In this document: positions 15,141 to 39,948 of the stretch, in pieces
Numbering within the stretch: the first letter of the stretch is position 1
Layout: every line of letters starts with the position of its first letter
NCBI GenBank assembly: GCA_030704615.1
Contig: CM060732.1
Location: 60,078,001-60,142,000 of the forward strand
Length of the DNA: 64,000 nt
DNA from: Takakia lepidozioides
Taxonomy: Eukaryota > Plantae > Bryophyta
Direction: 5' to 3'
Position numbers and translations under genes: made by a program
The notes under the pieces: generated by a model
Told to the model about the DNA's origin: nothing
The model's database searches: none
What the model saw: only the letters and a program-made list of their open reading frames with translations

Positions 15141-15151
15141 CACCAAAAACA

Positions 15152-15177
15152 CTATTTTAACTAATTCTGGACTTCTG
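15152..15177. repeat. Left (subterminal) inverted repeat of giant element
   Basis: ctattttaactaattctggacttctg vs reverse complement of 39923-39948, ctattttaattaattctagacttttg; overlaps a hairpin ttctggac...gtccagaa (15165-15189). Confidence 0.85.
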
Positions 15178-16199
15178 TTTGGTCCAGAAATAATATGAGA
15201 AATATGAATAAACAAATTATTATTGAAATAAAGCGATATATATGATTATTTTGGTTATTTTATACAATATCCTCCAAACATTTTTTGGAGACAATATAAG
15301 TATGTATTGTGGTTTTAGAAGAACATCCACTGCCAAGTTGACGTTCACGAAAAAAAATGGGAGGATGCAATAAATTACACCATGATGTGAGGTCAGATAT
15401 GTAAAACGTTTTGCAAAAACTGGTTGCCATCAAAACCAAACATAGAACAATCATGGCATGTGATGAAGAGGATGATATGAAAGAATGTGTCCGCATACAT
15501 TGATGATAAACATTCATATTTTATTAGAGATTGCAACTTTGGCGTTGCAGTCAGACATAATGTAACGTCAACTGTACATCCGTTGGACTTAATGTTATCC
15601 AGCGGCTCGAAGCCATACAACGGCTTACACTAACCCATTAATATTACAGAGCCTCCTCCCAAACGGCTCGCAGTCAAGGCATGTGTTCGAAGACGCCTCC
15701 GGTTACCACAACCACTTGCAACGGTCTCCGCACCAGATGAAACGGAAATACTTTCGGAGAACTCGAACCTAGTAGTAACATTATCATCCGAAATGTTACT
15801 TGAACTCTACTTGTTGAATCTCTTGATGCCCTTGAAGCCTGCCGGGAAGCCCGCCATTCTTGCCAATCACGAAGCTCTTCTTCTTCTTTTCGAATTCGCT
15901 CCTTGAATGTGACTGGGCAAAACAATTTTTCATATGACAAATGTCAGCTGAAATGTGGAACATTTGTAGAAAAAATGATAAAGTAAAAGTGCAAGTGGAA
16001 GACACTTTCAAGATCAAATTCTCCATAAACAACAAACAGTGGGATAAGTACATACCAAGGTAATCAGGTTCCTTTTGTTGTGGGATCCAAACACGAGGAT
16101 CAACATATCTTCCATACCAAGCCCAATAGGCATGGTCACGACCAATAGGCTTACGAGAACACTTGGCAGGGTTCTCGCTGATGTAATCTACGACTGTTG

Positions 16200-16700
16200 A
16201 AGCTGCAGCCATTTTCAATATATATGGCCACAGCTTTTGTCATATCATCCTGGTCAACCAATCCCTTTGGTGATGGCTTGTATGAAATAGGGAAGAATCC
16301 AGTATTTGGTGGGTTTCGGAGGCCCTTTGATGGCTCATCATCAACAAGGAGTATTTGTCCCTGAGTTGCAAAGGGTGTACCAGGGTACTTGGCAAGAACA
16401 GTGCGAATATCCTTAAAGATATTTCATCCCAGGCATGATGTAACCGGTAGTGTCTTTGCAATCCTCAGCTGACCAGATGAAGCAAAACTTCTTCGCAATT
16501 TTCGTAGGAACTAAGCACTCGAGCATCCTACAAAGAACATGTCTTTCAGCACATGACCAGATCGCCACGTGAAAATGCATGAACGCAAGGTTGAGAAACT
16601 CCAAGACTCCGGGCCGGGGAACCACAAAAGGTCTTTCGGGAACATGAACTGTTTGACACTCAATATTAACAGCATCCGTTTCCTCTTCCCCGATGTGGCA
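16200..16700 (-). pseudogene. FCP1/NIF (HAD, CTD-phosphatase-like) domain, copy A
   Basis: KRMLLILSV... PRPGVLEFLNLAFMHFHVAIWSCAERH... FIWSAEDC... QILLVDDEPSKGLRNPPNTGFFP across frameshifts. Confidence 0.75.
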
Positions 16701-18234
16701 AATGAAGGTTGATGGACGATACCATCCTGCGCAATTTAAGTGTTCCCGCCGTCAGAAACAACACGATGTAGTGTTTCTTAGTTTCAGAGTGACCTCTACG
16801 TTTTCGGAGACATAAGTGTCCCGACAATGGACTACTGTAAAGGACCAAGAGTAGACCATATATCGAAGAGTTCGAGATCACGAAAAGATGAACGTCGGCT
16901 GTCAAGTGGAGGTTAGTGGACGCACCTTGTCGGGAGGCGCATTCAAGAAGTTATGCGGCTCCATACTCGCTTGTATAGAAATTACGGAGTTAGTTTGGGA
17001 CAGAAAAACAAACTGCAAACGAAAGTGGAGAAATTGTTTTGAAATGTACCATTGAAGCCTTATTGGAATGTCTTGCAGAAGAAAGTGGATTCCCGCGGGC
17101 TTGGATTGACGAGGCGCCACAACATCCGAGGGAGTCCTCAAGTGTTTGGAGTCCGCTCTTTTTTTCTTGTCAGCCTTTTGTCCTTTGGAATGATTCCCTG
17201 CAGAGGAAGGAAATGGCTCGGGGGCTTTTTTCGCCTCTTTGGTGCAGAACATTGTGCAAGCAGTTCAGGGTCACGCTGTGTCGATGTTGGAGATGTTTTG
17301 CCATTGAACGACGGGAGAAGTGGCAACAACAGGCAAGCACAGAAAATTGTCCCTTTGAGCACTCGACATCCTGGATGGAATGAAAACGCAACGAAGGAAT
17401 AATTTACCTCGGAACTGCATTCCAATGCAGACGTCGTTTGACAGGAAGGTCATAATCTGCAGATTTTCTTACCTGGAGCGACAGATGAATATCAGACCCC
17501 AAACTAAGTGAAACTAGGAGAATGAGCAAGGAGCGAGAAATGAGTTTAAGTCACCTGACTCCTGCGGATTTGGGCTGTCCAACCCTCGTGCTGGGGAGAT
17601 ATGCGAGGAAGAGACGGAAGCAGGTGCAGCGGAGCCGTAGCCGAGTCCCCGACGGTTGGATAGACCAGACCCTGCGTACTGAACATGGAGGGTGAGGAAT
17701 GTTGGGAAAGGTCGATAAAGTCTCCGGGATATTTGTGTTCTTCACCTGCACCTTGGACTTTACCCCAGGAGGACCCGAGAGGAGAAGAGTGTCGCCCGCT
17801 TCCCGGGAGGACAAGGGTCTGACAGAGGATCCATCCTCAATTTGAGCACCATCGTGAACCCTCGGAAAGCCTTCAATACTCCGACTCACAGCTGATCCGG
17901 AGGGTTCCTTTAGGGGACTTGAGGAACCGATGACGTTGTCAGCATCTCCTTGAACCTGCCAAAGAGACATAATCATAAATCCGGGAATGCACGAATGCAA
18001 ACCTCCACTGAACAGTGGAGGTCACTAGATATAGTCATGTCCCCGTATGAAGGCCTGTATCAGAGTCTTGGGATTGCCCGGAATGTGCGTCAAGAATTCA
18101 ACTGAAAATGAGTCAAAATGAGAGTACCATATCTTTCACGTGTGTGATTACAAGGAAATGAAAAAGAGAAACCATGAAGATATTCAATAGCTCGAGTGAG
18201 ATGGGATTGATCAAAAATAATTTATTTTGAAGCA

Positions 18235-37630: not shown

Positions 37631-38299
37631 GAAATAAATTTTTCTTGGCCCTTCTTGTTTGCGTTGGGGGATCCTTTTTGTTATCTTCTTATGTCGCACT
37701 GAACCTCGAATGTCCAGTGGACGTTCTCGTCCTTTGTTTCTGGTTTGCTGGATGTTGGCATGCTGGTCAACAAAGATGACCCTGTGGGGGAGTTTCGCCT
37801 ACATAACATATAGATCACAAGAACAAAATAGGCGGGCATGACCACTGGAGTCTTCAAATTCGGTCAAAGAGGTTTTTAACAACGGAAGAAAATAGCCCAT
37901 TTCCAGTCATTCTCTGAAACATTGGACTTGCTTTTCGCATAACCAATTCTCCCACTGAAGTCTCCCACTAGGAGGAGCCTTACTCAATCGTTGTTGACAT
38001 ACAGTTTTTCAATTTGCCAGTCCTCAAGTTTTTTCTATGAGGTTTTCTCCATTTTCCCTCTAAGCTCTACGACTTTTCTGCACCAAATTTTCATTTCATT
38101 TCATTTTCATACTTCTCATCTTTGGCCCTGGTTTAAGAGGGAATTTCACATGTCCTTTTCCGTTGTTCAAATTTTAAGCAATTTTTATTTCTCATAGTTT
38201 TTATTTGGTGGTTGATTTTTTATCATCTCTCATGTTTTCTTCAGATCCATTTTCTCCCATGAGATCCAGGCGCTTCCTAAAAGTCGTTATATAATGCCA

Positions 38300-39500
38300 T
38301 TTTCTTTCCAAATCTATTCATACCATAACCATAGCCATAGCCATAACCATTATGGTTATTGAAATGTCTTTTCCCTTCACATTTGCGCTAGCTTTTTTCT
38401 TTGTTTTGGATTGACATGCATTTAGGCATGTTACAGTTTGCTTTCTATGTTACATCTTAATACTAGGTCCAGGTTCCAACGACGAGTCTTTCATTTAAAT
38501 ACTTGTCCATAATATTAGGTTCATAATTTTTTTTGGCTTACTAGTACCCTTAGCGAAGTCTGGAGTTTTCCATAAGACTTAGTGTTTGTCTATTTTGTAA
38601 CTTAAACAAAAACCCTAAACCCTTGCCCTAAACCCTTACTAGAAAACCCTAAACATTTACCCTTAACCCAATACCACAAAACCCTTTCCATTCCCTTTGC
38701 AAATGGGAATCAACTATCCATACCATAATTATAACCATTTTGGTTATCCAAATCTCTTCAATGTAACGGAATTTCCATTTTGTACCATACTAACACACAC
38801 TAAGTTGTAGCGAGTGCGAGTCTTCCGACATGTATGCTCACCATTTCTGCCTTCAACCCAAACCCTAAACCCTCGTCGGGAACCCTAAACAAAACCCTAT
38901 GCCATTGTTACGTCTAAACCCTTACCCTTCCCTTGCAAATGGGAATGAAGTATCCATACCATAACCATATATATCTTAATACCAGGTTCCAAGGACAAAT
39001 CCTCAATCTAAATACTTCTCCGGCCCAATGACTCTTCCATAATATTTGTTTCTCTATTTTATTTTTTATTTTTTATCCTTCTAACACACACCAAGTTCTA
39101 GCGACTGTGAGTCTTCCATATTTGTTTGTCCAATAGTGTCTTAAACCCAAACCGAAAATCCTACCTTTACCATCACCCCTAAACCATTAATCTTACCATA
39201 AACCAATAACTTTAGTGTACTACCCTAGTTACACTCCAAACCTTATTGTACTACCATGTAACATCTTCTCAATGTTTCATGCTCTTTTAATATTTTCTTT
39301 TGTTGGATAAGGTATGATATAATGATTACAGGGATATCAAATTCCTCAACCATTTTTTAATTCTACCGAGTGCGAGTCCATCATATTTGTTTGTCTTTTT
39401 GTACCCTAAATCCAAACCCTAAACCCTTACCCTTACTGTAAACCCAAACCTTATTATACTTCTCTCTAGTTACACCCCAAACCTTATTAGTACCTCTTTC
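38300..39500. repeat. Diverged ~250-300 bp tandem units with telomere-like AAACCCT motifs
   Basis: Recurrent ccataccataaccat, ttgcaaatgggaat and gcgagtgcgagtc blocks; aaaccctaaaccct clusters at ~38610, 38860 and 39410. Confidence 0.7.
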
Positions 39501-39922
39501 GAATGTTTCATGCTATTCTAATATTTTACTGCTCTTGTCACATCCAAAACATGATTCATTCCAATGGCGTGGTATGTGAACATTGTGCTTCATATGAAGA
39601 TTCAATCAATAAAATTACTAGTATCGAGTATGGTAGAGTACGAGTTTGGCCCATGTTCGATGCGACCCATTTGTTTACCATGATGACCTGCAATGGAATA
39701 TTACTTTATTCGACTTCCAAGTGGACGTTCAATGAATTGTTCAATACTGCTACTTCACATTGAGCACTTCAATGTCAAATGGACCTCTTCTATGACACAT
39801 TTTGAAACAAGTATGACATCACCTGAAATTTACAAAGTTCAATCACACATTACACCATGATATTATTAATATTTCAATTAAATTTAATACAAATATATAT
39901 TAAGTTTAGTCCGGATTTAAGC

Positions 39923-39948
39923 CAAAAGTCTAGAATTAATTAAAATAG
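39923..39948. repeat. Right inverted repeat of giant element
   Basis: caaaagtctagaattaattaaaatag, complementary to 15152-15177; overlaps the junction ATAGGG. Confidence 0.85.

Follow-up and report, generated by a model that had tools for sequence, protein, structure and literature searches.

A giant DNA transposon of the moss Takakia lepidozioides with a ParB-like accessory gene and an element-wide palindrome array

Giant DNA transposons that carry a ParB-like gene beside their transposase are already on record from algae of the brown, red and green groups. In the brown alga Ectocarpus, the 21.5-kb giant Sola1 element Sola1-1_Ec32, described in 2025, bears an opposite-strand accessory gene that joins a ParB-like domain to an N4C/N6A DNA methylase (PMC12477816). 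In the red alga Bostrychia moritziana, a giant Plavaka element, likewise of 2025, encodes PAG3, which couples a ParB-like domain to a 2-oxoglutarate (2OG) oxygenase and has tandem inverted-repeat arrays alongside (bioRxiv 10.1101/2025.02.11.637652). According to the authors' proposal, PAG3 attaches to the transposon that encodes it and modifies it (bioRxiv 10.1101/2025.02.11.637652). The present analysis concerns a 64,000-nucleotide stretch of the moss Takakia lepidozioides (GenBank assembly GCA_030704615.1, contig CM060732.1, positions 60,078,001 to 60,142,000, forward strand; hereafter the window), which holds a giant DNA transposon of the cut-and-paste type, preserved as an old, defunct copy (Table 1). 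The element is a land-plant member of this known kind, a giant transposon with a ParB-like, DNA-modifying accessory gene, and it extends the class to land plants. Along its whole length recurs a palindrome, and the question of which protein reads it occupies most of what follows.

Sola1-1_Ec32 is among the closest known systems. Both elements are giant DNA transposons with terminal inverted repeats, and in both an accessory gene with a ParB-like N-terminal domain lies opposite the transposase strand. The likeness is one of described domains, and the hosts differ, an alga in one case and a land plant in the other. The methylase fusion of Sola1-1_Ec32 is matched in relatives of the window's gene in the liverwort Riccia, and none is detectable in the window copy. 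A text search of the Ectocarpus paper found no mention of palindrome arrays (PMC12477816). The PAG3 system differs in that Plavaka belongs to another superfamily (CACTA/EnSpm) and the partner domain is a 2OG oxygenase rather than a methylase. Its repeats form tandem arrays next to the gene, whereas those of the window are single copies every ~1 kb from end to end; moreover, relatives of the window element carry such palindromes without a ParB-like gene. The original prediction for this stretch, made from its letters alone, had placed the novelty in the combination of cargo and motif, which the Ectocarpus (PMC12477816) and Bostrychia (bioRxiv 10.1101/2025.02.11.637652) elements have largely pre-empted. 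What is new is an explicit, constrained 24-bp palindrome spread over the whole element, a NIF-like phosphatase cargo, and palindrome arrays in relatives that lack the ParB-like gene, which bear on the published 'binds and modifies its own transposon' hypothesis.

More distant parallels are also instructive. Bacterial and plasmid ParB, Noc and KorB share with the predicted cargo protein an N-terminal ParB/sulfiredoxin (ParB/Srx) fold and have 16-24 bp palindromic sites in cis. Unlike in the ParB/parS clamps, the arginine of the GxxR motif is replaced in the window's family by GQH[S/T], there is no ParB match in Pfam, the host is eukaryotic, and palindromic sites occur also in elements without the protein. 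No ParA-type partner was found among the open reading frames (ORFs) scanned. Phage ParB-methylases and ParB-dependent DNA-modifying enzymes, prokaryotic or viral and tied to DNA packaging or hypermodification (PMC4738411, PMC13229309), again couple a ParB-like domain to a DNA-modifying enzyme; their likeness to the window's family is structural. A functional analogue is provided by the VANC anti-silencing proteins and motif arrays of Arabidopsis VANDAL (Mutator) elements (PMC5735166). There, too, short family-specific motifs have accumulated in introns, upstream regions and other non-coding sequence, co-evolving with a DNA-binding protein that the element encodes (PMC5735166), and the tandem mini-arrays found in Riccia resemble VANC motif arrays. 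The VANC motifs, however, are 8-9-bp, non-palindromic and in one orientation, as opposed to a 24-bp palindrome; the proteins are unrelated, and the binder here is a candidate. Finally, CACTA elements possess subterminal transposase-binding repeats, the TnpA sites of En/Spm. The window element resembles them in having multiple short family-specific motifs near both ends and the transposase gene, and in a left end that begins with CACTA, but its transposase matches DUF7869 rather than Transposase_21, its right end reads CCCTA, and its motifs span the whole interior.

Palindrome arrays in the element and its relatives

The 24-nt palindrome AACCTCCACTGnnCAGTGGAGGTT occurs in 12 copies at up to 3 mismatches, against 0 in 100 shuffles. 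Allowing 6 mismatches brings the number to 15, together with a degenerate half-copy at 39706, and no copy lies outside the element within the 64-kb window; the ~16 palindromes from end to end of the original prediction are thus confirmed. Interior copies are spaced roughly 1 kb apart, and they form one recurring motif family, not two. Differences between copies are concentrated at mirror positions 4/21 and 7/18, where they take the form of C-to-G and G-to-C swaps, and the other positions are almost invariant. This pattern is not random decay. Such symmetric tolerance looks like that of a site under constraint, recognised in double-stranded form by a dimer with matching symmetry. The copies are confined to non-coding parts, being subterminal, upstream of the transposase, in introns or in gaps between genes; 0 of the 15 overlap homology-supported coding sequence (chance ~0.006). 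A metagenome scan with the palindrome core returned 14 contigs with 1 match each, none related to the element, which were judged chance matches; the scan thus yielded no additional copy of this family.

Could the palindromes be functionless, left behind by a small repeat able to form hairpins or by internal duplications that multiplied within the element? Copies 20065 and 20457 do share a 160-bp local duplication (20059-20220 and 20451-20611). It is the only one, however, and unique sequence surrounds each of the other copies. Four copies are perfect although the long terminal repeats (LTRs) of a nested retrotransposon have diverged by 8%, variation is confined to symmetric positions, and at least 6 related loci show the trait with sequences of their own. 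Taken together, these observations render a functionless origin very improbable.

The recurrence emerged from a comparison set of 12 sources, comprising the window and 11 loci fetched through the transposase or the cargo. A uniform detector found recurring palindrome families in 7 of the 12 (the window and 6 loci) and 0 in shuffles, each family being a different sequence. Locus L001 carries ~10 copies of GTATCGGCGGnCCGCCGATAC, and a second element in the same locus carries the related GTATCGTCGAGACGACGATAC; these two neighbouring elements have related transposases as well as related palindromes. At least 7 copies of ATCTGGAGATCTCCAGAT are present in L002 and at least 12 of ATCGAGGGATCCCTCGAT in L018, and the Riccia loci L017, L021 and L022 have other palindrome motifs of their own. 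From these sequences, palindromes look like a lineage-wide trait, with each family having its own 18-24-bp version. In L001, L002 and L018 they are found on the upstream and downstream sides of the transposase gene and also within its gaps; in an annotated Riccia locus, the arrays are intergenic and intronic.

The motifs of individual loci merit a brief description. In L017 (Riccia sorocarpa CM100795.1), GTCCATGAnnnTCATGGAC occurs at 1829-2097 and 14377, near both presumed ends, and an inner motif, CTTCGGGACGCGTCCCGAAG, is present in at least 20 copies at 3104-12909, between genes and at ORF boundaries, with many copies in mini-arrays of 28-bp period. Two cargo-less families have GATC at the palindrome centre (L002 8208-8606, GGAGATCTCC; L018 5486-6279, GGGATCCC), and the Riccia inner motif is centred on ACGCGT. 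These centres resemble restriction or methylase-type sites.

A non-coding location is also what one would expect of cis-regulatory sites, whether for promoter, enhancer or splicing functions, that a host factor recognises or that work as hairpins in DNA or RNA, without any element-encoded binder. All window copies are in non-coding gaps, several of them directly 5' of ORFs (19035, 20065, 25107, 26014 and 28060-28276), and the intergenic and intronic arrays of Riccia agree with this. Yet the palindrome differs from family to family, which is hard to fit to one conserved host factor and points instead to a co-evolving, element-encoded partner. Copies near both ends (15322, 39706) lie far from any ORF, and the symmetric tolerance at 4/21 and 7/18 suggests a dimer on double-stranded DNA. 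Purely host-read sites are, on this evidence, distinctly unlikely.

Transposase and cargo as candidate readers

Two element-encoded proteins come into question, and the relatives help to tell them apart. A family hidden Markov model (HMM) detected no ParB-like domain within the 4-10 kb flanks of L001, L002 and L018, and comparison of the unexplained ORFs of L002 with the ParB-like family by hhalign gave no match. The transposase is the only homology-identified protein common to these three palindrome-bearing loci. Because arrays exist in relatives with no ParB-like gene nearby, the palindromes do not depend on the cargo. The original proposal that the cargo protein loads on the palindromes is accordingly weakened by the arrays of L001, L002 and L018, which have no ParB-like gene within ~10 kb. 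Its expectation that palindromes are family-specific held in that each family has its own, but such arrays are found in cargo-less relatives as well.

A palindrome or array sits in the same gap of the transposase gene, between the part with the CCxxxC motif and a helix-turn-helix (HTH)-like segment and the DDE part, at 29216 in the window, ~10017 in L001, ~10169 in L002 and 5327-6279 in L018. This shared gap, together with the related transposases and related palindromes of L001, points to the transposase. By parsimony, the transposase is the favored candidate for the palindrome binder, with a probability of roughly 0.5, because the palindromes appear lineage-wide, the cargo is not needed, and the protein has a conserved N-terminal CCxxxC motif plus HTH-like segment. 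In such a scheme, the palindromes would be binding sites for a dimeric, sequence-specific, element-encoded protein, and the transposase would read them through that N-terminal region. By binding, the protein would label the element as 'self' so that its ends can be recognised and brought into synapsis, and would probably also control the element's own genes. The minus-strand cargo would then constitute an accessory module that probably serves to modify the element's DNA or chromatin, whether or not it uses these palindromes too.

Several observations weigh against assigning the sites to the transposase. L021 of Riccia has a ParB-methylase gene and 14 palindromes with no transposase within 10 kb, although a locus of this type is expected under either binder model if it is a non-autonomous copy. 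L017 has two palindrome families, outer and inner, of which the inner is densest around the ParB-like gene; this layout would fit one site family per protein. Five related loci, decayed or truncated copies, lack any palindrome family. The termini of the relatives show only 9-12-bp inverted matches, not above chance, so 'subterminal' is established for the window alone. More generally, co-occurrence alone cannot assign a binder, and ParB-like proteins encoded elsewhere in the genome could serve the cargo-less relatives in trans.

The converse proposal, the idea of the original prediction and also the hypothesis in print for algal elements, is that the ParB-like cargo would bind the palindromes as a parS-like array and recruit or activate a DNA modifier (the methylase in Riccia), or coat the element, thereby marking it or protecting it against silencing. 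The sites of canonical ParB proteins are 16-bp palindromes. A ParB/Srx fold is supported for the cargo, with Foldseek alignments to Noc and ParB of 170-190 columns that run past the N-terminal domain. In Riccia, arrays are densest beside or within the ParB(-methylase) gene, and L021 combines cargo and palindromes without a transposase. Elsewhere, inverted-repeat arrays adjoin the ParB-like gene PAG3 in Bostrychia (bioRxiv 10.1101/2025.02.11.637652), and one DNA-modifying enzyme depends on a phage ParB-like protein (PMC13229309). These parallels must be set against the arrays of the same design in relatives without a ParB-like gene nearby, and against the protein itself, in which GQH[S/T] is invariant and the CTP-binding GxxR arginine absent. 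Its conserved R152, N174 and HAR.Q are constant across families with different palindromes and thus suggest no specificity determinant, and no methylase part is detectable in the window. Pairwise identity among the Riccia ParB domains, three in all, is nearly uniform (52-58%), and yet their elements differ in which motifs they share. The check for co-variation of palindrome and cargo suggested with the original prediction is, given this equidistance, uninformative, though palindromes do differ per family; its expectation that transposase and cargo co-occur in other copies is borne out in Riccia L017 and L022. Overall, the cargo is a doubtful binder.

A broader model combines both proteins. In bryophyte Sola1-type elements, the ParB/Srx-fold protein would load on the element-specific palindromes dotted through all non-coding stretches and, with the linked methylase and NIF-like phosphatases, establish an epigenetic mark or shield directed at the element itself; the transposase would bind as well, either at these sites or at a second set. 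Such an arrangement seems rather unlikely; if true, it would be a eukaryotic, transposon-borne analogue of ParB/parS. The identity of the palindrome reader is now directly testable, as proteins and sites are defined in Riccia, where intact copies exist.

Coding modules of the element

The broken transposase and the broken ParB-like gene were each searched piece by piece. On the plus strand, as the original prediction had it, lies a transposase gene whose pieces match Pfam DUF7869 only, and the protein is assigned to that family by sequence. Homologs of ~45-53% identity come from plant-like assemblies, and the liverwort Riccia sorocarpa contributes a remoter one (34%). Alignment of the N-terminal part brings out a conserved CCxxxCxQ motif and the HTH-like segment 'vC..AW..IHGisKSAY'. 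The superfamily is probably Sola1. Sola elements generate 4-bp duplications (AWWT in Sola1), can exceed 15 kb and have been reported from the moss Physcomitrella (PMC3845634, PMC10741241, PMC9033089). That occurrence in moss lends the assignment indirect support, as does the accessory gene of like kind in the Sola1 element of Ectocarpus (PMC12477816). Membership in CACTA/EnSpm, a candidate in view of the CACTA start of the left end, was rejected on the basis of the CCCTA right end, the lack of a 3-bp duplication and a transposase of DUF7869 rather than Transposase_21 type.

The cargo is divergent from the transposase, the ParB-like gene running from 24685 to 22892 (-) and the transposase from 28324 (+). 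Riccia L017 is laid out alike, with an intact homolog of the ParB-like gene divergent from a DUF7869 transposase, and the family is multi-copy in Riccia. The original prediction of a divergent minus-strand cargo containing YRPLN...FFVIGGQHT proved correct insofar as both ORFs are present, in different frames; they are two pieces of one broken gene. An indexed protein search with the window's 160-amino-acid ParB-like piece returned nothing within its length band, and an exhaustive search of 1.84 billion representative proteins yielded only 61 related clusters. In a 37-member alignment, the core reads (I/V)SGQHS..AA, with an invariant Q-H and a near-invariant G and S (GGQHT in the window), followed by the conserved R152, N174 and HAR.Q. 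ParB CTPases need the GxxR arginine of the nucleotide pocket. None of the 37 members has the arginine of this GERR-type motif at that place, and GQH[S/T] without it does not indicate a CTP-dependent clamp.

Sequence searches gave little hint of the fold. Pfam found no ParB-clan match for the window pieces or the Riccia proteins, with a sub-threshold DndB match in 2 of the 37 members, and a PDB sequence search with the family profile gave no match. The window's own protein being broken, the fold was read from an AlphaFold2 model of the Riccia homolog, which has a mean confidence score (pLDDT) of 86.4. Its top ~37 Foldseek matches in the PDB are Noc, ParB, Srx, PadC, SbnI and KorB, with probabilities mostly >0.5 (0.9-1.0 for the best ~25) and a best E of 1.6e-3. 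Among viral models, it retrieves phage ParB-like proteins (best E 3.3e-4), one match being annotated as a modification methylase. ParB, Noc and KorB have an HTH DNA-binding domain after the N-terminal one; in the model a helical region follows the core, and across the full alignments to Noc and ParB the TM-scores are only 0.3-0.4. On the strength of this model, the cargo family is assigned a ParB/Srx fold. Of the original prediction of a ParB-like CTPase, therefore, the predicted fold stands, and the CTPase motif does not. Within the window's ParB-like gene lies a 297-bp hairpin (23192-23488) with two 134-nt arms, 75% complementary, which may be a small foldback insertion or one resembling a miniature inverted-repeat transposable element.

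In Riccia, an N6/N4 DNA methylase is either fused to the ParB-like gene or encoded next to it, a link that the original prediction lacks. The longer paralogs run on from the ParB domain into a helical region and then into a methylase-like domain of this type. A separate, adjacent ORF at L017:2959-3147 matches Pfam N6_N4_Mtase above threshold (2.1e-8), and the fusions P0057, P0058, P0059, P0061 and P0063 match it below threshold. A model of the full-length fusion P0058 had a pLDDT of 42.7, too poor for structure search. Neither tblastn, nor a fusion-tail profile, nor hhalign found a significant methylase part in the window. In the fused paralogs (P0055, P0063; alignment columns ~860-900), motif I is kept as VLDFFSGG, and D-V/L-T-H-P replaces the DPPY of motif IV; to judge from these residues, the fused methylase-like copies may be catalytically inactive. 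A separate L017 ORF (L017:2129-2677, +) has DVPYG.

The NIF-like genes are a second conserved cargo type, one absent from the original account. The Riccia NIF-like gene at L022:16903-17265 (+) passes the Pfam threshold and adjoins the ParB-methylase gene, and so appears to be part of the same element type. The three window NIF-like ORFs have FDVNG or LDIGY where the catalytic DxDxT is expected.

Boundaries, insertion site and nested retrotransposon

The transposon measures 24,801 bp, or 18,382 bp once the nested retrotransposon and its duplication are subtracted, in keeping with the ~18.4 kb net unit, bounded by inverted repeats and splitting a pentatricopeptide repeat (PPR) motif, that had been predicted. 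The bounds proposed then, 15141 and 39944, located the element and were 6-9 bp off its true ends at 15150 and 39950. The ends are ~29-bp imperfect inverted repeats, CACTATTTTAACTAATTCTGGACTT from 15150 and, as reverse complement, CCCTATTTTAATTAATTCTAGACTT from 39950. At neither 15150 nor 39950 can a target-site duplication be made out, whatever its length, the copy being old and its ends mutated, and the 4-bp AWWT mark of Sola1 is not visible there. The minus strand of either flank translates as a PPR protein of the PLS type (on the left by eye only), and the insertion site is a PPR pseudogene. The interrupted PPR gene (14635-15149 and 39951-40444, -) is itself degenerate: upstream of the split motif it contains an in-frame stop, and immediately downstream of the insertion the reading frame changes. 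The rest of the 64-kb window contains no second copy or fragment of the transposon.

The prediction of a dead copy with a nested gypsy element agrees with the broken genes and with the retrotransposon at 30033-36446. Its type was assigned from the order protease, reverse transcriptase, RNase H and integrase. It is flanked by a perfect 5-bp duplication, GGACA, at 30028-30032 and 36447-36451, its LTRs are 612 bp long and 91.9% identical, and its insertion point falls inside the transposase motif vGHTHEDI(D/N).

Table 1. Coordinates of the transposon, its genes and palindrome copies, and the flanking host sequence within the window
Feature	Position	Strand	Basis
Whole DNA transposon	15150..39950	+	Inverted ends, length arithmetic, PPR coding on both flanks
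Left terminal inverted repeat, CACTATTTTAACTAATTCTGGACTTCTG	15150..15178	+	~25 of first 29 positions match right end
Right terminal inverted repeat, reverse complement CCCTATTTTAATTAATTCTAGACTTTTG	39922..39950	-	End comparison
Transposase N-terminal region, ends in CCxxxCC motif; HTH-like segment in next piece	28324..29166	+	tblastn to L001, L002, L017; alignment
Transposase catalytic part 1 (…HDKMD…, …MDNSTKNNKN)	29266..29952	+	Pfam DUF7869 4.7e-8; homologs 45-53% identical
Transposase catalytic part 2 and C-terminal region, at least 3 frames	36438..37627	+	Pfam DUF7869 2.3e-6; tblastn
ParB-like gene piece 1 (…YRPLNVKHKDEVKASL…)	24140..24685	-	Family HMM positions 5-53, E 3.4e-6; reciprocal tblastn with Riccia
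ParB-like gene piece 2 (…FFVIGGQHTIIAAK), different frame	23983..24243	-	Family HMM positions 87-115, E 1.8e-3
ParB-like gene piece 3	23737..23946	-	Family HMM positions 123-172, E 0.022, collinear with pieces 1 and 2
Segment matching region just after ParB domain of Riccia ParB-methylase fusions	22892..23023	-	Tail HMM positions 6-42, E 2e-4
Further ORFs, possibly helical middle region of ParB-like gene	22079..22953	-	hhalign matches collinear, not significant
NIF/FCP1-like, HAD-phosphatase-like ORF, LVLDIGYL in place of DxDxT	19291..19962	-	Pfam NIF 6.7e-4, below threshold
NIF/FCP1-like ORF (IIFDVNGVL)	18518..19033	-	Pfam NIF 3e-3, below threshold
NIF/FCP1-like ORF fragment	16416..16625	-	Pfam NIF 2.3e-4; matches Riccia L022 NIF-like gene, 6e-5
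Palindrome copy, 4 mismatches, subterminal, 172 bp from left end	15322..15345	.	Motif search
Palindrome copy, 4 mismatches	16891..16914	.	Motif search
Palindrome copy, 1 mismatch	18000..18023	.	Motif search
Palindrome copy, 3 mismatches, directly upstream of NIF-like ORF	19035..19058	.	Motif search
Palindrome copy, 2 mismatches, ~100 bp upstream of NIF-like ORF	20065..20088	.	Motif search
Palindrome copy, 2 mismatches, in local duplication	20457..20480	.	Motif search
Palindrome copy, perfect	21622..21645	.	Motif search
Palindrome copy, perfect, between ParB-like pieces 2 and 3	23992..24015	.	Motif search
Palindrome copy, perfect	25107..25130	.	Motif search
Palindrome copy, 2 mismatches	26014..26037	.	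Motif search
Palindrome copy, degenerate (6 mismatches), between divergent cargo and transposase	27940..27963	.	Motif search
Palindrome copy, perfect, upstream of transposase	28060..28083	.	Motif search
Palindrome copy, 3 mismatches, upstream of transposase	28276..28299	.	Motif search
Palindrome copy, 1 mismatch, gap between transposase N-terminal and DDE parts	29216..29239	.	Motif search
Palindrome copy, 3 mismatches, just past end of transposase homology	37702..37725	.	Motif search
Degenerate palindrome half-copy (…CCAAGTGGACGTT), subterminal, 221 bp from right end	39706..39729	.	Copy alignment
Nested Ty3/gypsy LTR retrotransposon	30033..36446	+	LTRs, duplication, domain order
Host PPR coding, upstream part of split motif	39951..40195	-	Pfam PPR 3.4e-7 (passes), translation
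Host PPR-like coding, downstream part	14635..15149	-	Translation read by eye; no Pfam match

The right arm of the element is C-rich and contains short runs of the plant telomere type (CCCTAAA) at 38609-39433. At up to 2 mismatches, a telomere-type 14-mer occurs 5 times in the window, 4 times in the right arm and once just outside the element at 40366, against 0.4 expected. The relatives, for their part, sit in transposon-rich regions: L002 has piggyBac-like and pogo-like transposon genes as neighbours (13352-14434, 16912-17337), and in L024 the CACTA-associated DUF4216/DUF4218 lies beside the related element at 9723-11425.

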